Shown piece after piece: positions 1,335 through 57,532 of a stretch of 64,000 nucleotides of DNA. The stretch is from Macrostomum lignano. Its lineage: Eukaryota. The stretch is taken from contig NIVC01000606.1 in NCBI GenBank assembly GCA_002269645.1, positions 1 through 64,000 on the forward strand. The letters run 5' to 3'. The notes beneath the pieces were generated by a model. It did not search any database. It was not told the origin of the DNA and saw only the letters and a list, made by a program, of their open reading frames with translations. Within the stretch, counting starts at the first letter, position 1. Every line of letters begins with the position of its first letter. Made by a program: the position numbers and the translations under genes.

Positions 1335-35108
<33,774 letters not shown>

Positions 35109-40600: not shown

Positions 40601-43549
40601 TGCCGGGAAAATGATAGGTAAGAGCTGAGCAATGTCTCTTCGGGAGAGGCCAACCCGTTGTCTTTATCGATTGCTTGAGTCAGGGGTTGCCAACCTTTTT
40701 ACCTCAAGGGCCAAATGGAGAATCTAGTTGCAGGCTAGAGAACGGGAGAGAGGAGATGGGATAGAGGAGAAGAGAGGAGAAGGAAGGAGATAAGGGAGAG
40801 GAGAGAAGGGAGAGGGGAGAAGGGACGGGAGAGAAGGGAGGGGAGAGAAGGGAGAGGAGAGAAGGGAGGGGAGAGAAGGGAGGGGAGAGAAGGGCGAGGA
40901 GAGAAGGGAGAGGAGAGAAGGAAGAGGAGAGAAGGGAGCGGAGAGAAGGGAGAGGGGAGAAGGGACGGGAGAGAAGGGAGGGGAGAGAAGGGAGAGGAGA
41001 GAAGGGAGGGGAGAGAAGGGAGGGGAGAGAAGGGCGAGGAGAGAAGGGAGAGGAGAGAAGGAAGAGGAGAGAAGGGAGCGGAGAGAAGGGAGAGGAGAGA
41101 AGGGAGGGGCGAGATGGGAGAGGAGAGAAGGGAGAGGAGAGAAGGGAGAGGAGAGAAGGGAGAGGAGAGAAGGGAGAGGAGAGAAGGGAGAGGAGAGAAG
41201 GGAGAGGAGAGAAGGGAGAGGAGAGAAGGGGGAAAAGAGATGGCCCACGGGTCGGAGTTTCCCTACCCCTGGCTTGAGTTAGATCGGTGAGTCCTAGAGA
41301 ACATCACAAAGCCTGAAGACTCGTCAGGCTAATCAATAATAAATTTCCTCTTTTTTCCAGCGCCTCCATACCTGAAGAATTGGAAATACTGAAGTGAGCC
41401 TCAATTTGAATTTCTCAGCTTCAATCGTTCAACCCAAGCTTGGTTGTGTGTTGAACTTGCCGCCTTTTCAGACCCGGCTTTGTGCGGGTCAACCTGCCGT
41501 ACTTTTACACGAACGAGATGGTCGCGTTTTTGTTTCACGCTATCGACATGATCAGCCAGCACGGCTGGAAACTGCTGCCCGAGGTGATTTTTTACGAAGC
41601 ATTTAACTTAGTTAAACCACAGATACTAAAATAACTAGATGGGCCACTCAGGCACATATACTTAGTAAAACAGCTTTCTACTTTCATTTCAGTAGCAAAG
41701 AAGAATACATAAGCTTTTATAAAAATAAAGGCAGCTGAAATGACTTTGATAAGTTTAGAAGCCCAAGCTTGCAGGCGTAAACAGCTTGCTAATTGGTTCA
41801 GCAGTAATGTACATTAGCCAGTCCACTGAAATGTACATGGCAGCTTTAGGCTGGAATTCCGAGAAAGGCAATAAAAATTGGGGTGGGGCGGGGGGTTAAT
41901 GTGGAAAGGCGCAGTTGGAGGGTTTAAGCTGGGGTAAAAGCCAATAAATGAGCCTTGACTTTAAAAATAAATTAAAATGCTTCTGTTTAACTTACTACTG
42001 AACAGAAAGTAGCTTACACGCAAATGTGCTGAGTGGCCCATCTAGTTATTTTAGGATCTGTGAGTTAAACTGAATTTTTTTGTCCGCGGTTTGTTCACAT
42101 GTTTAGTAAGCTAACTTTTTTAGAAATGCCACTAAAGACTGGATAGCCAGAGAAGTTCCTATCTTTTATGCTATTTTTAGGGTGCTGTCTATGGTAGAAC
42201 CCGATGAAATCTATTTTGAGTCCGCAATTTTATTTTCCCGTTTTTTTAAACATATAGATCCAATCACAGAATATAAACAGAATGCCGATTCGAGCATTTT
42301 TGTTTAAAAAATCGGTGCAAGAATTGAAATCTTTGCTAAATTACTCTTCGCTAATTTATACTACTGGCCATAGACTTCACAACAAGAGTAGTGCACACGA
42401 ATTTTAATTCGGCTTCATGGAAATCGCTCGATTTGGCATTCTGTGTATATTCTGTGGATCCAATTGTTGTTGATCAATTGCGGTCTTTAAAAACTTCCAA
42501 GAGGACAACTCAACCCTCTCCGTTTCTCAGTACACCTGCAACCCGCACACGGGGGCCTGGAGGCACACCGACTATGCCAGTCAAATTGCCAGCCTGAAAG
42601 ATTTCCGTCTGGACCGGCCGGTCAGCAGGATGAGCTACTTGGAACAGCAGCCGGTCAGCCTGCAGGTACGAATTCACCATTTTTATGCAGGATTTTATGG
42701 TGGTGGGGGACAAAGCCGAGGATTTTACATGTACATGACTAAATTCCTAATCGGTGTTGTCATCGATCATTTTAGCGCCGCAGGCACTCATGTTAGCGCC
42801 GCAGGCACTCATGTTAGCGCCGCAGGCATTCATGTTAGTGCTGCAGGTACTCATTTTAGCGCCGCAGGCACTCATTTTAGCGCTGCAGGCACTCATGTTA
42901 GCGCCGCAGGCACTCATTTTAGCGCCGCAGGCACTCATGTTAGCGCCGCAGGCACTCATGTTAGCGCCGCAGGCACTCATTTTAGCGCCGCAGGCACTCA
43001 TGTTAGCGCCGCAGGCACTCATTTTAGTGCTGCAGGCGCTATGTTTTGTCGCCCTGAAGCAAAATTATTGATTTCCATAACGGGTCAACAAGGTAGGGTG
43101 GGGGGGGGACAAAGCATTGGCATGTCCCCCTATAGGCTCTTACTGGGGGGGGGACATGCCCCCCTGTCCCCCGGTAGCGACGCCCCTGTTTTTAAGCCAC
43201 AAACCTGGATCATTTATCGTAGCGATTTATGGGATTCAAAGCAATTGTATTTCTATTAATGCAGAGCATTGCAAAGTCGGCTGCCAATGTACTTCAGTCT
43301 GCTTCAAATCGAATTAGAAAGGTAAGTCGTGTTTAAGTAGATTAACAATGTCATCATGCATCTAAATAAGTGGTGTACTCGCCTCATTTCTGAATGCTAA
43401 TTTACCAACAGCGACTACAAGACGGCAAAGCCAAAGCTGCGAACCCGCTTGACAACAGCGGCCTCAGCCAGCAGTTGGAGACTCGAATGCGCTGGTTTGC
43501 TATGCCCGACGAAGCTGCCGACAGTCTTCTGCTGGGACAGAAAACTTGA
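37638..43549 (+). CDS. Class-V PLP-dependent aminotransferase / cysteine desulfurase-like protein, 11 exons, about 723-740 aa
   Basis: Exons 37638-37982 (GC donor), 38067(or 38016)-38184, 38715-38745, 38835-39912, 40421-40485, 40558-40617, 41361-41393, 41472-41583, 42531-42665, 43265-43321, 43412-43549; phases are consistent. Motifs: YFDYVASGR, YGNTH, EHHSNLLPW, WDYA, SPHKFVGGPG (PLP lysine), EEGGTP, RAGCACAGPY, KPGFVRVNLPYF, RWFAMPDEA. Confidence 0.85.
38245..38640. repeat. 27-28 bp minisatellite containing TGACGTCA palindromes
   Basis: gtttagtgacgtcacctcgatgtgggga, about 14 units. Confidence 0.9.
40681..41271. mobile_element. hAT-like MITE carrying an internal purine-rich array
   Basis: Termini CAGGGGT...ACCCCTG with a perfect 8-bp TSD, GCTTGAGT (40673-40680 and 41272-41279). 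Confidence 0.8.
41608..42073. mobile_element. MITE with about 90-bp imperfect TIRs
   Basis: cacagatactaaaataactagatgggccactcag on the left is the approximate reverse complement of ctgagtggcccatctagttattttaggatctgtg on the right. Confidence 0.7.
42688..43188. mobile_element. MITE with an internal 21-bp minisatellite (family shared with 62425-62966)
   Basis: Right end agcgacgcccctg; flanks tttttatg/tttttaag may be an imperfect 8-bp TSD; array unit ttagcgccgcaggcactcat(g/t). Confidence 0.6.
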
Positions 43550-45290: not shown

Positions 45291-46060
45291 TTATAATTTA
45301 CACCGCCTGCGGTCATAATGGAAAAGGCATACAGCCCTTTGGCAGTACCGACGGCAGCAATTCGAGCAGTGCCGGCCACAGACGGCGGCCTCAAAGTCGG
45401 CCAGCTTGACGGACTCTACGACAACGTGGCCCCAGTGGCGTAGAAGGTGCCCGAAGACTGCTTCGTACATGTAGTCCTGCTTGACTTTCCGGACATTATC
45501 ATGAAGCTGCTGTACATGTTGTACATGCTGTACATGTGCGTGGACGCTGTAGAACTGGGTGAATGGTGACTTCACTGTGCCATCGAGAAAGCAGCGCCTT
45601 GCGCTTCGCAGCACTGACAGTTGGTCGGCGTCTGCGAACAGCAGATGCCGCCGCGAGGTGCCTGGCACCCACTTCAATTTCAAGCTCGATTGGGTGTTTT
45701 TTAGCCGCCCTTTTTTGTCTGCAGCACACACAAAACACGAAAGTTTGCCGCCTCGGCGATCAAACTCTCGCTGCGCTATATGGCAGAAGCCGGTGTGAAA
45801 GGCATCCGCCATAGCGACCCTTTTGTCTTATTTTGTACGTGCCGCCGCAGTGCCCGGTCGACATCCAGCTCGTAAGTGTGCCGCTTGCCATGACAGTGCG
45901 AAAAATGCGCCTGGCGACTGTGTGGCAGTACCACCGGAATGTGTGGCCGCGACAACGCATGACGCAACGCTAGTACATGCTGCCAGCCTTGCCCCAATTT
46001 CGGCCCTGCTCGATCGTAACAGAGTGACAAAATCAGAAGGTCCGCGCCCCTCACCACTCT
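45291..46060 (-). pseudogene. Degraded MULE/Mutator transposase fragment, with a possible FLYWCH remnant
   Basis: RHLLFADADQLSVLRSARRCFLDGT-VKSPFTQFYSVHA, DFEAAV and CLFHY resemble the MULE DDE domain; GHTFRWYC lies upstream in another frame; the reading frame is disrupted. Confidence 0.7.
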
Positions 46061-49000
46061 GCTGCCGCGGGAACGATGTGGAACACCAGCTCGGGCCCTT
46101 CTTTGTCTTTAAATTCTGGCCGGGCAACTCCGGCAACTCAAACGGCGACTCATGGCCGTGAATTGGTCAGACATGGATCGAAGGACGTCACCTACTCCGC
46201 CAGCAGGTGCGACAACTACGTACCACCCGTCTCATACATTACGTACTTAATTTTAATTACTTTTACAACGATAGTTTCTAAGAAAAGTTACTTCCAAGAA
46301 TGTACGCGTTTTAAACAATTTTAAAATAATGCAATTTTAAAATTCTCTTGCTTGTGCAGCTACATGTATATAATCAATGTGCCATGTCCTTTTGTACTAC
46401 ATAATTCTAGATGCCGGTTCTTTGGCTTGCAGACGGGAGTTCTGCAAATACCACTCAGATATCTGTTCATTGCTAGGTTTATCGAGCTGTGAACACTAAC
46501 CTGCAATGGTTTTAATTTTTTCGAAACGATAATGTCACGAGGGCACAATTATGTTTAACATAACAATTTTACTCGTTAAGAAACAGTAACCGTTTCTTTG
46601 GTCTTTGAGGATTACCAATATTGAGTTTAATTAATATTATTACCTTTATTTTTCAGTGTTACGGCAAAATGAGTCACAGATTTTTAATTTTCAAACGATC
46701 TAAAATGTATTCAGTAGTTTTTGTATTTGCTAACAGACTCGACCAGAGGTCAGCCTGTCTGTATCTGACTTTTTCTTTTTTTACCTCTTTAGTGTTTGTT
46801 AAGAAATTACTACTGCATAATATATTCATGAGAGTCCTATCCCTTTAAACCTGCTAGTGAGATTATTAAACCTTATAATTTTCTCAACCTCCGACCTAAA
46901 TCACTTGATTCGATTCGACCTGTCGTCCTGTCGAGTCTACACGACTTTACACAATTTCCACCATCCACCCTTATTTAATGTGAAGTTTCTGGGACTCTAT
47001 GACTAATATTTAAGTCTATTATATTTTAAGTACAACTATTTCTTTAATAGCAAGTCCGGTAGGCCTATGACGTGTCCATCACTTTGATTTTGGTGGGCCA
47101 TGCTTTTTGATAGGCCAACCCCAGTCCAGTTTGCCTTTGCCTCTAGGTGCCCAACTGTCAACTGTCATGACTGTTCTGTGTTTGACATTCATGGTATAAA
47201 GTTATCTTGATTCTAGGTATAGTCTTAGACTCATAGGCCCTAGTCTTAGTCATTTAATTTTTCTATGTATATATTGTCTTGAGTTGCAAATAGACCTAGG
47301 CCATGCCCTAGGCCTACCCTATGCTATATTGCAGATTGTGGCAAGTTGATTTTGACAAAATTACTGCATACTAAAAATAGGCCTTATTAGGCAAAAAGGT
47401 GGCAAGTGTTTATACTAGAATGCCAGAATAAAACTGGATATTTTAAGATAAGAATTAATTTTTGTTTTTTTACATTGCATTGTATAAACTGTAAACTATA
47501 ATTTTTTCAGTTAAAAGTATTAATTGTTATATATTGATTGTAGATTAAAATTATTTTTACATTGTATGCTAAATTATATGTTAGGTTAATTAGAGTAAAA
47601 AGACAACTCTATGGAGTGCGGATCTATGGATATGCCATAGTTTGGAATACCCTGAATATTATATGCTGGACTAAAATCTCTCACAATTTTTTTGGTATGC
47701 CAGTGTATGCCAAATTTTGAGTGCAGGCCCACTTTTAAATCTACGCCAGTATTGCAACAATAAATGACCTTTTTTATGTTGCAACAATGAATTTTTTTTA
47801 ATTATGTAAAGTAACCTTTTTTTGCTAACAATTTGGTTAATACTTTTGCTTTTTTGCTGATATTATTTATAGTGGAAACTTAAAACATGTAAAAAATTGT
47901 TTAAATTTTCTATTACAAGCTCTAAAAACCTAGAAAGTTTAAAATTGCTTAAAAAGAAACTTGTTTTATATTTTTTATTCACTTTTCACAAACTCTTCTG
48001 TGTGATATTATTAACTGCATGCACACTATTTTCTTAGACTTTTTGATTTGATTCTGCAATTGCAAGAACATATATGGCACTTTTTGAAAATGCATTTTTA
48101 TATGCTAGATAGTATGCCAGATTTCAAAAAATAAAAAATTGTATGCCAACTTTACGCCAAAAGTTGTGAGTGTATGCTGGATTAATCCGGCATGCTACCC
48201 CTCTTCCAGACTATGGTGGATATGTCTTTACTCATATAAACAAGGTCTATCATACTATATAGTATAAAATAAAAAAATTTAGAAGTTTCAAAATCTCACT
48301 CGACCCCCTACTCATTGGCTGGTGGGTTTCAAATATACTAGGAAGATAAAAACAACCTTGAAAACAAACTCCTATATTTACCTCTTTATTCACCATGGCC
48401 CACAAGCTACCTTGTTCCTAGCTAGCTTTCTAACTACTAGGCAATTTTTTTATATAAGTCAGTATAGCAAGTGAGCTAAAAGCAGGGGTTTTGCAAGTCA
48501 CATTTTAGGCATATTAAACATTTTTAGGTGGAGTAGTTTGACAATCTAGTTGTTATATATTATCATTGGTCTGACATCCCTCTATGGATATGCCTATGGT
48601 AGATAACTGCTCTTATAGCTATGACTATAGAAATATGGTAGTTGCAATCATATTTTGTAAACTCCCATAGCCACCACCTCTCAAATCTGTTATATGGTAT
48701 GCCAGAAAAAGTGACCCCCTATATCATAGTTATAGTTTCTACTAGAAAAACAAATTTACTCATGATATATATACTAAACATTATCTAAAATCCATTGCAG
48801 CAATAATGGACCTTTTTGTTGCAACAATAAAGGACCTTTTTTATTATGACAATAAAGGACCCTTTCTTACATTACAATATTTCATCTTTTGTATACCAAT
48901 TGCTAAGCCATACACTAGCTCTGTGAAGCAATTTTCTTGCAGGGATAGATTGTTTTATATGCTAGATTTTATGCCAACAATTTTTTCAATTATATGCTGG

Positions 49001-49704
49001 AATTTTCTGGCATGTAAAATTTAGGAGTTGGGGTATAGCCATTGTTATAAATAAATTAAAAAATTAAAAAATTAGAAACAAAATAAAACATAGATACTTT
49101 AGCAAACTATATAATAGATTTAAAAACTTTAAATTATACATAATAAAGTACAATATAACACTACCAAATTATAACTTTTATTAATGTGAAAAAGTTCATT
49201 AGTTGTGCTTTCAGTAGTGATTTGGTATTGAAACTCTATAAAATAAATGGAAATGTAATCTTACAAAAGCAACTGAGTGTTTGTTTAAGTTTCTACCCTT
49301 ATTTAAGTACTAGATATTATGTGCTATAAGTATTATGTTATCTTCCTGATTCAAAATACTTTATTACTAGTTTAAAGTGTGCCATTTTTTATCACTTTTG
49401 AATAAAACATAGTGTCTATATAAGATAGTGGTGCTTAACATTTTTTAGGTGACCCTAATTTATTTACTTGCATCATTTTTTAATGTTTGCAACTTCTTTT
49501 ATAATCAATATAATGCATTGTTAAGTATGATGTACTCACATTTCTTAGTGCTGCAACCCCTAGAAAATGTTCACGCAATCTCACTGGGGGTTTCAACCCA
49601 TAGGTTGAGAACCACAGATATAAGGCAGGCTACTTGGGATATAACTTTGATCAATAATCTTGTATTTTTGTTCCAATCAGAAAGTAGCCAAAAATTGTCT
49701 CAAT

Positions 49705-49925
49705 AAAATTACTTTAGGGATAACAGGAAAATAAAAATTAAAAGTTCAAATTTAAATTTTTGTTTTTTACCTCGATGTTGAATTAAAAAATCAAATTAAA
49801 GTTTAAAAAAAAATAAATTATAATTAAAAAAACTTTATTTTTTAATTAAAAAAAAAAAAAAAAAAACCGGAATAATCTTATTATTAAATTTTTCTTATTT
49901 AATATAAAATATGTACCTAAAGTAA
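49705..49925 (+). other. Mitochondrial LSU (16S) rRNA-like fragment (NUMT-like, extremely AT-rich)
   Basis: TTACTTTAGGGATAACAG, AGTTC, ACCTCGATGTTG and ACCGG occur in the order and at roughly the spacing I recall for the rrnL peptidyl-transferase region. Confidence 0.55.
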
Positions 49926-50450
49926 ATAAATATTATTGATTAAAAGTATTAATTATATTAAAATGAATTGCTTAACATTCAGTAGTAGATGATTTTTTAA
50001 TATTAATTTTCTTTTAAACATCCACAAAACATCATTGGAACAATTTCTTATAGGTCTAATCCTTATGCTTAAAATACATGATTTAATTTTGACAGAAAAT
50101 TCAACTTAATTTTGCCATTTCATTATTGTTAAGTTCTCTCAAAAGGTAAAAAAAATATCAATAAAACCATGAATAAAACCATGAAGCTAGAATTAAACAA
50201 AGTTTACTTTTTATGTTTTTGTTGACATTTATTTTCCGCCTATTATATGTAGTAAATGTATTATATATAGTTAAAGAACAGCAGATGCAATATATGCACT
50301 ATTTAAAAAAATTATTACACACTGTAAAATGGCAACATAAGCATACTTCAATAAAAGATTAAACATTTTTGCATTAAGCAACAAGGTACATATACAAAAT
50401 TAACAATGATCTACATTTGTGTTATTCTTATAAACTGACAAAAATTGCAG

Positions 50451-50885
50451 GCTAACGGCAGGCCAGTGGTCACGGTGACCCGAGTGGCATCATTCTCAGC
50501 GGCCCACAGGTTGCACTCGATTCATTTATCAGCTGAAGAGAATGCCAGCTTATTTGGCAAGTGCAACTGGCCCAATGGTCACGGGCACAACTATACAGTT
50601 GAGGTGAGTGTCCGCGGTCCAGTAGATCCAAGCACCGGTATGGTAATGAATATCGCCAATTTAAATCAGATTATTGATGAGAAACTGCTTAGCCAAGTGG
50701 ATCATTGCTGTCTGGACAAAGACGTGGCCTATTTTGCTAATGAAGGCCACGTCAGCACAACTGAAATGCTAGCGGTGTTCGCTTGGGATTGCTTGAAGCC
50801 TCACCTGCCAGACGGTCTCCTGCACAAGGTGTGCGTGTGGGAAACGCCTAAGAATGCCTTCGTCTATAAGGGCCAGAGGGCTTGA
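50451..50885 (+). CDS. PTS: 6-pyruvoyl tetrahydropterin synthase (single exon; no genomic ATG at the 5' end)
   Basis: FSAAHRL, GKCNWPNGHGHNY, DPSTGMVMN, DH, STTE and VWET motifs. The ORF begins directly after an acceptor, ttgcag|GCT. Confidence 0.92.
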   Translation, partial: ANGRPVVTVTRVASFSAAHRLHSIHLSAEENASLFGKCNWPNGHGHNYTVEVSVRGPVDPSTGMVMNIANLNQIIDEKLLSQVDHCCLDKDVAYFANEGHVSTTEMLAVFAWDCLKPHLPDGLLHKVCVWETPKNAFVYKGQRA

Positions 50886-50984
50886 TTTTATATGTTGCTT
50901 TGCCCAAGAATTGTGATTATTTTGCTACAGTAGTGTTTTAGTCTCGACCTAATTTTGCGCTGCTTCCCTTCCAGATCTGAAATT

Positions 50985-51630
50985 TACACCGTTAGCTCCC
51001 CCTGATCCCATATTTACCCTGTTAGCTTCCCAGATCCCAAATTCATGCTGTTAGCTCCCCCTGATCCCATATTTACCCTGTTAGCTTCCCAGATCCCAAA
51101 TTCATGCTGTTAGCTTCCACAGATCCCAAATTGATGCTGTTAGCTTCCACAGATCCCAAATTGATGCTGTTAGCTTCCACAGATCCCAAATTCACACTGT
51201 CAGCTCCCACAGATCCCAAATTCACACTGTCAGCTTTCACAGATCCCAAATTCACACTGTCAGCTTTCACAGATCCCAAATTCACACTGTCAGCTTTCAC
51301 AGATCCCAAATTCACACTGTCAGCTTTCACAGATCCCAAATTCACACTGTCAGCTTTCACAGATCCCAAATTCACACTGTCAGCTTTCACAGATCCCAAA
51401 TTCACACTGTCAGCTTTCACAGATCCCAAATTCACACTGTCAGCTTTCACAGATCCCAAATTCACACTGTCAGCTTTCACAGATCCCAAATTCACACTGT
51501 CAGCTTTCACAGATCCCAAATTCACACTGTCAGCTTTCACAGATCCCAAATTCACACTGTCAGCTTTCACAGATCCCAAATTCACACTGTCAGCTTCCAC
51601 AGATCCCAAATTCATGCTGTTAGCATCTCA
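50985..51630. repeat. 30-bp minisatellite, about 20 copies
   Basis: agatcccaaattcacactgtcagctttcac repeated. Confidence 0.95.
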
Positions 51631-52737
51631 GATCCCAGACCAGACAGATATTCGGCCTTCAAAATTTTGAAGGGATTCCTCGTGAAGCTTGATATTTATA
51701 TTGTCGTGCAATATTTTAACATGAAGTTATTTTCCTTAACAGTTGCTTCATCTTTTATAGTCAATTTTTATCTATTTTTACAGTCCCATCTGTTAATTAC
51801 CTCTACTCATTTTCATTTAGTGTTGGTGTTTTGCATAATACGTTCATTATTCCGAAATTTTCTCAATTATTCCTATTGGTATTACCTACAAGTAAAATTA
51901 AATATGCACCTCGATCATTTATTGTATATTTTCTGATACTTTATATATTCAATATGTACTGTTAACTACAAGCTTAAAGACAAACCTGATCATTCATTGA
52001 ATCTGCTAAGTAATTTTTATACTTATTTTTCTAGATGCATCATCTGAGGTCATTTTAAAACAATCGAATTGTTAAATAAACAATTGGTAGAGGCCGCTTT
52101 TTATTATAAACTGAGGCATTCTATGTTTGAGTATTATGTTTTATTAATTCAGTACAATATTATGTTAGTAAAGTCTGTCAGCTTTAGGTGGATAATCTTC
52201 TTTGGCATCAAAGCGCTCTGAGAAGTTCAAGCCATGGCTGAATCCTTTGGCATCTCAGCAATCCCCTCCATGCGCCAAAGCATTTCAGCAATCAACTTTA
52301 TGAGTACTGTTACCCTCTAATTCAAGTCGCAATTGCAATTCAGCCAGTCAACTGATGATTAATAAAAAGCCTGTTGTGATTCAATCTTTGTCAGAACCAT
52401 AATTCAGTCAATCAGTTTTTGTTCAATTCAATTCTCACAATGCATTCACAGTCGAATAAATCTTGACCTTCGCAAAAAGCATCTTTTGCTAATATTTAAG
52501 CCCCTTCCCTTAGCATTAAGCAAAGACTTGCCCACCGGCGCCCGACATATTCTCTCCACTGGGAAGTTATCCTTACCCTTCTGGGGTACCGGGTGCTTAA
52601 ATCTCAGAATGGTAGTTTTTTAAGCCGTTTTTGCGCTTTCAACTGCAAGCCCCTAAAGGGGGCTCGTGTGCTAGTCTACATATACTAAAATCATATTCTC
52701 AAGCCGAAAGTTTGATTCCCCTATTCCAGCGCCTGAG

Positions 52738-52920
52738 ATGCTGCAACGGTTTCGCCAGTTGGACCATCTAGGCAAGAGTTTCGTTGGCACAGTGGTCGTG
52801 TTTGTCTCATTCGGCACCGGATTTGTATTCTTTGTTAAGCTGATGCGTTACAGACAGCTTGCCGCTTACAAAGCCGAACGATTAAGTGCGGCCGAAGCGG
52901 CCAGGCAAAATTCTTCGTAG
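52738..52920 (+). CDS. 60-aa single-pass membrane small protein of unknown family
   Basis: Acceptor-like ttcccctattccag 8 nt before the ATG; GC-rich codons in AT-rich surroundings; hydrophobic FVGTVVVFVSFGTGFVFFV followed by basic KLMRYR; AATAAA near 53050. Confidence 0.55.
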   Translation: MLQRFRQLDHLGKSFVGTVVVFVSFGTGFVFFVKLMRYRQLAAYKAERLSAAEAARQNSS

Positions 52921-53177
52921 TTACTACTGAGCGATAAAATGAACAGTTGATGGATTCGGTTTCAATGCGATTTAGATCTTTATTATCGAGTGTGTTTGTG
53001 CTATAGAGTACTTGTGCGCGTTAGATTTCACAATTGAAATTGTAGATATTAATAAATAAATTATTTGTACTGTGCATTCTGTAATTTAACCCAGTTATTT
53101 GGGTGCTTAGGTTGTTTACTTATATTTACTGTTAATTAATTCTGGGTCTAGTTAGTTCAGTAGATACTTCAGTAGGA

Positions 53178-53490
53178 CTATTGACTAACCCCTGATACTC
53201 TAGTAGGGCTATTGACTAACCCCTGATACTCTAGTAGGGCTATTGACTGACCCCTGATACTCTAGTAGGGCTATTGACTAACCCCTGATACTCTAGTAGG
53301 GCTATTGACTGACCCCTGATACTCTAGTAGGGCTATTGACTAACCCCTGATACTCTAGTGGGGCTATTGACTGACCCCTGATACTCTAGTAGGGCTATTG
53401 ACTAACCCCTGATACTCTAGTAGGGCTATTGACTGACCCCTGATACTCTAGTAGGGCTACTGACATCCCAGATACTCTAGTAGTAGGGCT
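53178..53490. repeat. 31-bp minisatellite, about 10 copies
   Basis: ctattgact(a/g)acccctgatactctagtaggg repeated. Confidence 0.95.
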
Positions 53491-53616
53491 ATTTGCTCAG
53501 CACGCTGTCTAAAGTGTATATTTTAACTTTAAAAGTGTATATTTTAAAGTGTAGTCAGTCAGTGCTACTCAAAAACTATTTTTTTATTTCAGCAGCAGCA
53601 ATCGTAACCAATAGCG

Positions 53617-54111
53617 ATGCCGCCCAAAATCGATCCCACCGCTATTAACATTGTCTACTTGCGCGCCGTCGGCGGAGAAGTTGGCGCCACAGCCTCGCTG
53701 GCGCCGAAGATCGGTCCGCTAGGCCTGTCGCCAAAGAAGGTCGGCGAAGATATTGCCAAGGCTACTAAAGAGTGGAAAGGCCTGAAGGTTACGGTGAAGC
53801 TGGTTATTCAGAATCGCCAGGCCGTGGCTAGCGTGGTCCCCACCGCTTCAGCTTTGGTCATTCGCGCGCTAAACGAGCCGCCGCGCGATCGCAAAAAAGT
53901 GAAGCACGTGAAACACACCGGCAACATTACCTTCGACGAGGTGGTCGACATTGCCAAGACTATGCGGCCGAGATCGATGGCTAAGACCATGGCTGGCACT
54001 GTGAAGGAGATTCTCGGCACAGCCCAATCTGTAGGCTGCACAGTGGACGGCTCCAATCCGCACGACATTATTGACAAGGTTAACGACGGCTCCTATGCTG
54101 TGCCAGAATGA
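53617..54111 (+). CDS. RPL12: 60S ribosomal protein L12 (uL11), intronless CDS, 164 aa
   Basis: [70 protein letters not shown]; AATAAA near 54190. Confidence 0.97.
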
Positions 54112-54439
54112 CAACTGAAACTGTTGTTAGCGATTGACACACCGGCTGCTATATGCGTCTGTTGTTGGGAGAGTACAACTAAGTAAAAAAATAAATTGAT
54201 TGGCTAATTGATAAAGCCAGACTGAGGTCTGCGTGTTCTCTGGAAGAAATCGCCTCTGTCTTCGCTTCACTCATTTTTATACATTTTCGTTCAATTCTTC
54301 CATGTTTAGATCTTCCATGTTAGTGAAACTTTGGGTTGATTGTGTCTAGCTAAAGCTCAGTTCCAGTCGTGTATTTATCAACTCCTAATCATCTACAGTC
54401 AGCTGCAATCGTTTTGAAATATCACCAAGTAGTGCCCGC

Positions 54440-55195
54440 TAGCAGCAGTTGCATCAGACCGAGTAGTGTTAGCAGCAGTTGCATCAGACCGATTAGTGCT
54501 AGCAGCAGTTGCATCAGACCCAATAGTGAAAGCAGCAGTTGCATCAGACCGATTAGTGCTAGCAGCAGTTGCATCAGACCGATTAGTGCTAGCAGCAGTT
54601 GCATCAGACCGATTAGTGCTAGCAGCAGTTGCATCAGACCGATTAGTGCTAGCAGCAGTTGCATCAGACCGATTAGTGCTAGCAGCAATTGCATCAGACC
54701 CAATAGTGAAAGCAGCAGTTGCATCAGACCCAATAGTGAAAGCAGCAGTTGCATCAGACCCAATAGTGAAAGCAGCAGTTGCATCAGACCCAATAGTGAA
54801 AGCAGCAGTTGCATCAGACCGATTAGTGCTAGCAGCAGTTGCATCAGACCGATTAGTGCTAGCAGCAGTTGCATCAGACCGATTAGTGCTAGCAGCAGTT
54901 GCATCAGACCGATTAGTGCTAGCAGCAGTTGCATCAGACCCAATAGTGAAAGCAGCAGTTGCATCAGACCGATTAGTGCTAGCAGCAGTTGCATCAGACC
55001 GATTAGTGCTAGCAGCAGTTGCATCAGACCCAATAGTGAAAGCAGCAGTTGCATCAGACCCAATAGTGAAAGCAGCAGTTGCATCAGACCCAATAGTGAA
55101 AGCAGCAGTTGCATCAGACCCAATAGTGAAAGCAGAGCAGCAATTGCATCAGACCCAATAGTGAAAGCAGAGCAGCAATTGCATCAGACCCAGCA
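54440..55195. repeat. 30-bp minisatellite with two interleaved variants
   Basis: agcagcagttgcatcagacc + gattagtgct or caatagtgaa. Confidence 0.95.
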
Positions 55196-55216: not shown

Positions 55217-57532
55217 CATAGAGTCTCGCCCATCGGCTCACTGCTGACCCGCTACGCCCAGCTAGTGATCGGTCCGGCCGGCAGCGGCAAGAGCACCTAC
55301 TGCGCCAACTTGCAGCGCCATGCTGAAGCCTGTCGACGACGAATTCTAGTGGCCAATTTGGATCCGGCCGCTGAGCATTTCGACTATCAGCCTGTTGCTG
55401 ACGTTCGAGATCTTATCCAGGTGCGATTAACATTATACGAGAATCAGAAATCGTCTACTAACGAGTAGCAAGAAGAGAATGTGCAAAAATGATTGCAGTA
55501 CAATAGTAGTTAAATGGGATTTTTTCATAACTTATTTGTCTACTGATAAGTTCCTAGCTAAGTGCTTTGTGCCAGCTGACTAAGAACTCCTCAAACTCGT
55601 TTCTTGACTGTCGCAAATTCTCTCAAGTCTTGATAATCAGTCGGAAAGTGCAACGACTCCCCTGAGCAAGCACACAAGCGCGCGGATACGTACGCAGTCA
55701 TACCCACAGGCACACACTCACACGGGAGAGTACAGCGGCCCTAACTTTATTTATCGTTGGGCATGTACACTTCACTGTGCCTTGGGGGGTTGGTCTTCAA
55801 GGGCGTTAATTGCACGAGCAGAGCCAAGCCGAGATTCCAATTCAGCCCCTAATTGATGTGACTGCACTTGGAATCGAGCCTACATCAGACAACTAGGCTA
55901 CGGCTGCCAACCCCGAAACACAAAGAAGTATTTTACAATTAGAAAGTCCGTGGCCGCTGTACGAGTACATCCTGTACTTGTGTGCCAGTGATTCGTGATT
56001 TGATATTCTATCCTCTTCAATCCAACCAGGTCCACGACGCCATGGAGGACTCCGAATTGGCCTTCGGTCCCAATGGCGGCCTTGTATTCTGCATGGACTA
56101 CTTGGCGCACAATCTGGACTGGCTTGACAACGCATTGGACGCCGTGGCAGAGGACGAATACCTTCTGCTAGACTGTCCCGGCCAGATCGAGCTGTACTGC
56201 CACCTGCCCGTGATGCGGCAGATTGTGGACTATTTGCAGTCTCGCGAGTTCCGCCTCTGTTCGGTGTTCGTGCTGGACTCGCAGTTCCTTGTGGATCCGT
56301 GCAAACTGGTCTCGGGCCTGTTCGCCGCCCTGTCGGCCATGGTTAATCTGGAGCTGCCGCACGTTAATCTGCTTAGCAAGCTGGACCTGCTCAGTCGGGC
56401 TCAGAAGCGTCAATTAACCGACTACCTGGAGCCGGACCTGGCTCACCTGCTGGCTGAACACGGCGGCCCCCTTTCTGCCCGCTATGCCGGATTGAACGCT
56501 GCAGTTGTAGACTTGATTGACAGCTATAGTTTGGTGCGATTTGTGCCATTCGATGTTAGCGACGAGCAGTGCGTGACGGATGCTCTGCTGCAGGTATGTC
56601 ATAGGGACTCTGCCGTGTTTGCTTATGAAAATTTCTCCGTGAATGTCTGAATCTGCATTGTGAATATTCGTGAATCTGTATCGTGAATGTCTGTGAATCT
56701 GCTCCGCGTAAATGTCCGTGAATCTGTAACGTGAATGTCTGTGAATCTGTAACGTGAATGTCTGTGAATCTGCATGTGAATGTCTGTGAATCTGCATCGT
56801 GAATGTCTGTGAATCTGCACCGTATGAATTTCCGTGAATCTGCATGTGAATGTCTGTGAATCTGTACCGTGAATGTCTGTGAATCTGCATCGTGAATGTC
56901 TGTGAATCTGCATCGTGAATGTCTGTGAATCTGCACCGTATGAATGTCCGTGAATCTGCATGTGAATGTCTGTGAATCTGCATCGTGAATGTCTGTGAAT
57001 CTGCACCGTATGAATGTCCGTGAATCTGCATGTGAATGTCTGTGAATCTGTACCGTGAATGTCTGTGAATCTGCATCGTGAATGTCTGTGAATCTGCATC
57101 GTGAATGTCTGTGAATCTGCACCGTATGAATGTCCGTGAATCTGCATGTGAATGTCTGTGAATCTGTACCGTGAATGTCTGTGAATCTGCATCGTGAATA
57201 TCTGTGAATCTGCACCGTATGAATGTCCGTGAATCTGCATGTGAATGTCTGTGAATCTGTACCGTGAATGTCTGTGAATCTGCATCGTGAATGTCTGTGA
57301 ATCTGCACCGTAAAGTACGTGAATCTGTACCCTGTGAATTTTTCAATGTCAGGTGGACATGGCTCTACAGTACGGCGAGGACCTGGAACCGCAGGAGCGG
57401 GACTATGAAGCAGCAGAAGGCGGCGCCGAGCATGAGCGAGTAAACGGCGACGGCGACTGCGAAGGCGAAATCGGCGCAGTTGGCGGCGGGCCACAGTTCA
57501 ACGTTGAAGACCATTTGGACTTTGGGTCCTAA
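55217..57532 (+). CDS. GPN3: GPN-loop GTPase 3, 3 exons (5' start uncertain; no in-frame ATG before the P-loop)
   Basis: Exons about 55217-55420, 56030-56593, 57353-57532. Motifs: [52 protein letters not shown]. Confidence 0.92.
55655..55885 (-). mobile_element. tRNA-SINE copy in GPN3 intron 1
   Basis: Near-identical to 1-170 and to the split copy at 31750-34560. Confidence 0.75.
56640..57335. repeat. About 22-bp minisatellite in GPN3 intron 2
   Basis: gtgaatgtctgtgaatctgcat(c) variants. Confidence 0.9.

Follow-up and report, generated by a model that had tools for sequence, protein, structure and literature searches.

The 6-Pyruvoyl-Tetrahydropterin Synthase Gene of Macrostomum lignano Probably Takes Its Start Codon from the Spliced Leader

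The PTS gene of Macrostomum lignano, a flatworm that is free-living, lacks an ATG at the start of its single coding exon, and we consider it likely (with a probability of about 0.85) that its translation initiates at the AUG of the spliced leader after trans-splicing at position 50451. In the proposed mechanism the PTS pre-mRNA would be trans-spliced at a TTGCAG acceptor, and the 35 nt leader, which ends in AUG, would be joined to G50451 (...TTTATTGCATG followed by GCTAACGGCAGG; junction string TTTATTGCATGGCTAACGGCAGGCCAGTGG). The leader AUG would then act as the initiator codon of a 145 aa 6-pyruvoyl-tetrahydropterin synthase (PTPS; M-ANGRPVVTVTR...), and the gene, having no start codon in its own DNA, would depend on trans-splicing for translation. 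We infer the joining of the leader at this position and the start of ribosomes at its AUG from the sequence, from the leader known from the literature and from 5'-partial gene models.

Results

A Coding Exon without Its Own ATG Directly Follows a Consensus Acceptor

The window, i.e., the whole stretch of DNA that was analysed, comprises 64,000 nt of contig NIVC01000606.1 from the M. lignano genome GCA_002269645.1, which we take to be the Mlig_3_7 assembly. Since the RPL12 ORF is found at record position 53617 of NIVC01000606.1, window coordinates equal record coordinates. The features of the PTS region are listed in Table 1.

Table 1. Features of the PTS gene and of its downstream neighbours in the window.
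Feature	Position	Strand	Basis or remark
CTGAC, possible branch point, 12 nt 5' of the acceptor AG	50435..50439	+	read from the sequence; branch-point role inferred
3' splice acceptor TTGCAG, proposed site of spliced-leader addition	50445..50450	+	fits [T/C]TNCAG; kept in L009 and L010
PTS coding exon, single, 144 codons + TGA, without ATG at its start	50451..50885	+	PF01242, 3i2b and 1b66 matches
GTGAGT donor inside the PTS coding exon	50604..50609	+	joined to the acceptor of the next gene in an L009 isoform
First in-frame ATG of PTS, codon 64 (..TGMVMN)	50640..50642	+	follows FSAAH and GKCNWPNGHGH
Tandem repeat, 30 bp units, 22 copies	50972..51637	+	3' of the PTS stop
Next gene: TTCCAG acceptor 52724-52729, 60 aa ORF 52738-52920 with own ATG	52724..52920	+	
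RPL12: TTTCAG acceptor 53587-53592, own ATG at 53617	53587..54111	+	
GPN3 first exon, without ATG, annotated CDS from ACC	55247..55420	+	GenBank annotation; PF03029; 9t5j_C

The acceptor region reads ...ataaacTGAcaaaaaTTGCAG/GCT AAC GGC AGG CCA..., with 50451 as the first base of the exon. Upstream of it the codons in frame are ...AAC TGA CAA AAA TTG CAG, which places a TGA stop (50436-50438, overlapped by the putative branch point) four codons in front of the exon; the ORF ends with a TGA at 50883-50885, and the gene is intronless. An earlier note on this DNA had described an ORF that begins in phase 0 right after ttgcag/GCT AAC GGC, with its first in-frame ATG behind the catalytic Cys/His motif, and our analysis agrees with it on both points. 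It also proved right about the DNA in front of the gene: the candidate exon with the donor AAG/GTACAT (ending at 50385) has no in-frame ATG, being open in phase 0 back to a TAA at 50338, and the preceding kilobases are AT-rich (31% G + C in 46000-50450 versus 51% in the PTS ORF). Translation from the ATG of codon 64 would give an 81 aa fragment devoid of the three zinc ligands and the catalytic Cys. With a stop four codons upstream and the first ATG at codon 64 there is thus no genomic in-frame AUG for a functional PTS, unless a cis-spliced upstream exon provides one. An assembly error as the cause of the missing ATG was rejected, because three separate contigs carry the same ATG-less sequence.

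In order to get an idea of how often such an acceptor occurs by chance, we counted the motif YTNCAG in the window. It occurs 345 times on both strands (323 expected), which makes about 172 occurrences on each strand of the 64 kb and a density of about 0.0027 per position and strand. By rough arithmetic, the approximately 10 in-frame codon positions that separate the stop from the conserved core would contain a match with a probability of about 0.03. When the whole window was scanned for YTNCAG-led ORFs of at least 70 codons without an early ATG, PTS was the only credible first exon; the remaining ORFs were either noise or, at 1-5 kb, exons internal to a coiled-coil gene.

The Exon Encodes a 6-Pyruvoyl-Tetrahydropterin Synthase

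Judged by sequence similarity, 50451-50885 encodes a PTPS, an enzyme of the tetrahydrobiopterin pathway, with predicted activity on dihydroneopterin triphosphate. The PTPS domain PF01242 was detected with 102.3 bits (cut-off 22.4), and residues 8-143 match human PTPS (3i2b) with E = 1.4e-44; the E value for rat PTPS (1b66) is 5.7e-44. Identity to animal orthologues is 52-60% among the matches listed. In an alignment of 13 sequences PTS keeps all invariant columns, including His20, Cys39, His45, His47, Asp85-His86, and Glu132, and deviates at three nearly invariant columns (N41W, N107M, and I112A). The conserved residues correspond to those that act in rat PTPS as the three zinc-binding histidines, the catalytic Cys, the Asp-His pair, and the Glu.

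The M. lignano protein shares with its human and rat counterparts the zinc-binding histidines, the Cys in GKCN.PNGHGH, the Asp-His pair, the STTE motif, and the C-terminal ET.KN..VY.G. It differs from them by a W in place of the nearly invariant second N of CNNPNGHGH, and by CC for KN after DH together with a two-residue insert (NEGH). In addition, and unlike the human and rat proteins, it is encoded in one exon that lacks its own ATG.

The Leader AUG Would Open the Frame at the N-Terminus Expected from Orthologues

M. lignano has a single spliced leader of 35 nt, CGGTCTCTTACTGCGAAGACTCAATTTATTGCATG, which is carried by about 30% of the genes, and [T/C]TNCAG is the top motif of its trans-splice acceptors, located right at the junction (PMC8629364). 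The PTS acceptor TTGCAG conforms to this motif. The last 7 nt of the leader, TTGCATG, are common to M. lignano and Schistosoma mansoni (primer sequence in PMC5832876), and Wiberg et al. regard the final ATG of the Macrostomum leader as a likely translation start codon (PMC10468722). We searched the window for an SL RNA gene with the leader sequence, allowing up to 3 mismatches, and by an Rfam scan; neither search gave a hit, so the window contains no SL RNA gene.

When the leader is joined in silico to 50451-50885, its AUG opens an in-frame ORF of 145 aa with no intervening stop (MANGRPVVTVTRVASFSAAH..., i.e., M-ANGRPVVTVTR...). The next AUGs of this mRNA are out of frame (ORFs of 21 and 10 codons) and are followed by Met64. 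The resulting N-terminus, MANGRPVVTVTR, stands in the same register as those of the orthologues MDGRPVVFVSR (P0011), MIRRPIAYLTR (P0088), and MQAPVVYITR (P0010). Two expectations of the earlier note are borne out by these results: a spliced leader ending in AUG, described for this very species (PMC8629364), and an N-terminus of normal PTS length when this AUG is placed in front of GCT; the length of the whole protein is normal as well. A point against initiation at the leader AUG is its weak -3 context on PTS (UUGCAUGG; U at -3, G at +4).

Gene Models of the Paralogous Copies Lack an Upstream Exon

Two further contigs, NIVC01003113.1 (L009) and NIVC01000197.1 (L010), have the same PTS-RPL12-GPN3 arrangement as the window. 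The PTS coding sequence of the window is identical to that of L010 and differs from that of L009 at 3 of 435 nt (0.7%), and the 5 kb upstream of PTS are 87-96% identical between the window and L009 and are rearranged. All three copies keep TTGCAG/GCT and lack the ATG.

The annotation pipeline had mapped leader-trimmed reads and cut transcripts at peaks of leader-bearing reads (PMC5730564). In L009 and L010 the GenBank models for PTS are 5'-partial, begin without Met and have no upstream exon. The L010 product (P0121) has 143 aa and starts with NGRPVV..., as its CDS begins 3 nt after the acceptor. For L009 a product of 64 aa over 5405-8953 is on record; rebuilding it from 5405-5557 and 8912-8953 gives exactly 64 aa plus a stop, which puts the start of the L009 CDS at the base immediately following the acceptor. 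The annotated 5' ends mark an exon boundary at this acceptor. In the loci compared, Met-less CDSs starting at a CAG acceptor or within 3 nt of it were found for four genes (an EF-hand protein, PTS, a 62 aa protein, and GPN3), and genes with an in-frame stop in the 5' UTR have CDSs annotated from an ATG. In each of the three copies, a stretch of at least 5.4 kb upstream of PTS is free of gene calls.

The window's own PTS copy has no gene on record for NIVC01000606.1, although it is identical to the annotated copy of L010. A UniParc entry of 79 aa (P0003) begins at the second internal ATG of PTS and carries the L009 allele (DHRCLD); it shows what a predictor that requires an ATG makes of this locus. 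A contig look-up for this entry gave no match. Exact look-ups of M-ANGRPVV..., of ANGRPVV..., of the form starting at TTG, and of the L009 allele found none of them in a collection of 15 billion proteins, in which PTS is represented only by the 143 aa GenBank partial and the 79 aa UniParc fragment. Among the 120 matches listed there was no other PTS of M. lignano, and the supplements of PMC5730564 and PMC5816591 list neither PTS nor GPN3 or RPL12.

Other Ways to Start PTS Translation Are Less Probable

A cis-spliced upstream exon, overlooked both in the earlier note and in the annotation, could supply an in-frame AUG together with a short N-terminal extension. The 10 kb upstream of PTS contain 239 ATG...GT stretches that are phase-compatible with the acceptor, and one of these, at 43229-43321, has the consensus donor AAG/GTAAGT and would add 31 aa. 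A further point in favour is that some insect PTPS proteins are 165-177 aa long. This stretch, however, is 7.1 kb away, has 38% G + C and lies at the edge of a tandem repeat, and the scan of the 10 kb revealed no nearer phase-0 candidate with the GTRAG donor motif of the species. The RNA-seq-guided models of the two paralogues do not include such an exon, no gene is called in the region in front of the three copies, and the N-terminus predicted from leader addition already matches the orthologues without any extension. We regard an upstream exon as improbable.

Even less probably, the PTS locus could be a duplicate in decay that is not translated, or could make only the 81 aa fragment from Met64. 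M. lignano has many recent duplicates (PMC8629364), and the intronless structure, the three changed columns and the missing record for NIVC01000606.1 would fit this view. Nevertheless, RPL12 next to it is intronless too, the copy in question is identical to the annotated one of L010, and there was no second M. lignano PTS among the listed matches. An intact ORF is found in each of the three copies, no catalytic residue is lost, and the coding sequence is far more conserved than its flanks, which argues against decay.

Least probable of all is a near-cognate start, in the absence of trans-splicing, at the in-frame TTG of 50445-50447, two codons before the exon: this TTG lies 3' of the TGA stop and has an A at -3, but it is part of the consensus acceptor, the annotated transcripts begin after it, the many ATGs of the AT-rich upstream region would capture scanning ribosomes before they reach it, and UUG is a poor initiator in eukaryotes.

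GPN3 Is a Second Gene without Its Own ATG

Initiation at the leader AUG receives further support from GPN3, which is located 4.4 kb downstream of PTS. The P-loop domain PF03029 starts at residue 7 of the first GPN3 exon, and the window has no in-frame ATG 5' of the ACC start. In L009 the gene begins with CTGCAG/ACC CGC TAC; with the leader AUG added in front, residues 1-59 align with residues 1-59 of 9t5j_C, the solved GPN-loop GTPase 3 (PDB), with E = 9e-22. As far as sequence comparison goes, this alignment from the very first residue is the strongest support for the view that the M. lignano leader AUG can be an initiator.

The GPN3 acceptor varies between the copies. It reads CTGCAG/ACC in L009 (12436-12447) and CTGCTG/ACC, without the AG, in the window (55236-55249) and in L010 (11650-11663). 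Because GPN3 has no ATG of its own and CTGCTG no AG, the copies in the window and in L010 may be left without a start. Another possibility is splicing of these copies to the in-frame caag/cag/cat acceptors (55214 or 55217), by which the protein would gain 10-11 residues.

Relation to Known Leader-AUG Systems

According to the account in PMC9851317 of Cheng et al. 2006 (J Biol Chem 281:733), the AUG at the 3' end of a flatworm leader can be the initiator Met. The same account puts the share of trans-spliced S. mansoni mRNAs with an in-frame leader AUG at 28% and states that more than 40 cDNAs need it. The reported leaders of parasitic flatworms all end in ATG and can provide a start codon (PMC12582326).

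PTS resembles the leader-AUG mRNAs of S. mansoni in several features: a flatworm leader ends in ...UUGCAUG, the first sense codon follows the acceptor in phase 0, the essential residues are not preceded by a genomic AUG, and the recipient is a conserved enzyme. There are also clear differences. M. lignano is a free-living macrostomorph and not a parasitic neodermatan, two neighbouring genes of one cluster share the trait, and the case made here is built on sequence and annotation, in contrast to cases built on cDNA or translation assays.

Start codons that sit in the leader are also known from the slORFs of nematodes, Oikopleura, and trypanosomes (slORFfinder, PMC9851317). The leaders of slORFs mostly provide near-cognate NUG codons, and frequently the resulting ORFs are alternative or extended versions (PMC9851317). 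In M. lignano PTS, by comparison, the only productive ORF of a housekeeping enzyme would start at a true AUG. With the start codon in the leader, gene finders that work on the genome alone miss or truncate such ORFs (PMC9851317). Our literature search found no study that lists leader-AUG-initiated genes in Macrostomum.

Of the four acceptor-started genes in the PTS cluster, two (PTS and GPN3) lack their own AUG. Conserved housekeeping genes of Macrostomum may commonly depend in full on the AUG of the leader, and we would put the odds of this slightly below even. If true, initiation at this AUG would be older than the parasitic flatworms. Genes of this kind would then be locked into trans-splicing, and one mutation of the acceptor, as in the change from CAG to CTG in two copies of GPN3, would displace the start or remove it. 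The PTS case would extend the mechanism shown for schistosomes to a free-living, early-branching flatworm that is ready for transgenesis; since M. lignano can be made transgenic, the mechanism is directly testable there.

The main use of our results is the correction of gene models; the understanding of the mechanism itself is unchanged. In public databases PTS is mis-annotated or missing, as a 79 aa UniParc fragment, as a Met-less 143 aa GenBank partial, and with nothing for NIVC01000606.1. Other leader-AUG genes will likewise defeat any gene finder that depends on a genomic ATG.

Neighbouring Genes and Repeats

In a minor GenBank isoform of L009, the donor at 5558 within the PTS coding exon is spliced to the next gene's acceptor at 8911, which forms a chimeric ORF of 64 aa. 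This isoform is a sign that PTS and the following 60 aa gene can be part of a single, operon-like precursor RNA. Downstream of the PTS stop, the + strand has its first AATAAA at 52075, and the tandem repeat in front of it (Table 1) is probably part of a 3' UTR or of an intercistronic region.

Initiation at the leader AUG cannot be obligatory on every mRNA, as the two genes between PTS and GPN3 indicate. In the annotation, the CDS of the 60 aa gene opens at 52732 with the first complete codon that follows the acceptor. Here the leader AUG would be out of frame and would give an overlapping ORF of 14 codons in front of the gene (MRLRCCNGFASWTI followed by a stop). At RPL12 it would open only MQQQS followed by a stop, a tiny upstream ORF of about 4 codons. 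RPL12 is intronless, and exactly the same product is encoded on six contigs of GCA_002269645.1; the look-up of RPL12 gave genome contigs and no transcript assembly.

Some further observations concern the surroundings of these genes. The 60 aa ORF is an annotated gene with no Pfam match and contains a hydrophobic stretch (MLQRFRQLDHLGKSFVGTVVVFVSFGTGFVFFVKL...). The four same-strand genes (PTS, the 60 aa ORF, RPL12, and GPN3) are separated by gaps that each contain a different tandem array; these arrays (50972-51637, 53163-53483, and 54438-55135) consist of 30-31 bp units in 10 to 23 copies, and the array after PTS in L009 is about 1.9 kb long. Within the AT-rich region upstream of PTS, 49440-49620 forms a GC-richer island (...gctgcaacccctagaaaatgttcacgcaatctcactgggggtttcaacccataggttgagaaccacagat) that resembles a short interspersed element; it has no Rfam match. 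In the three RPL12 copies without PTS (L007 5385-5440, L011, and L012) an EF-hand gene is located upstream instead. Its CDS is annotated from tgcag/TCA CGC ACT CGC ATG, and the leader AUG would be in frame there, 5 codons before the gene's own ATG.
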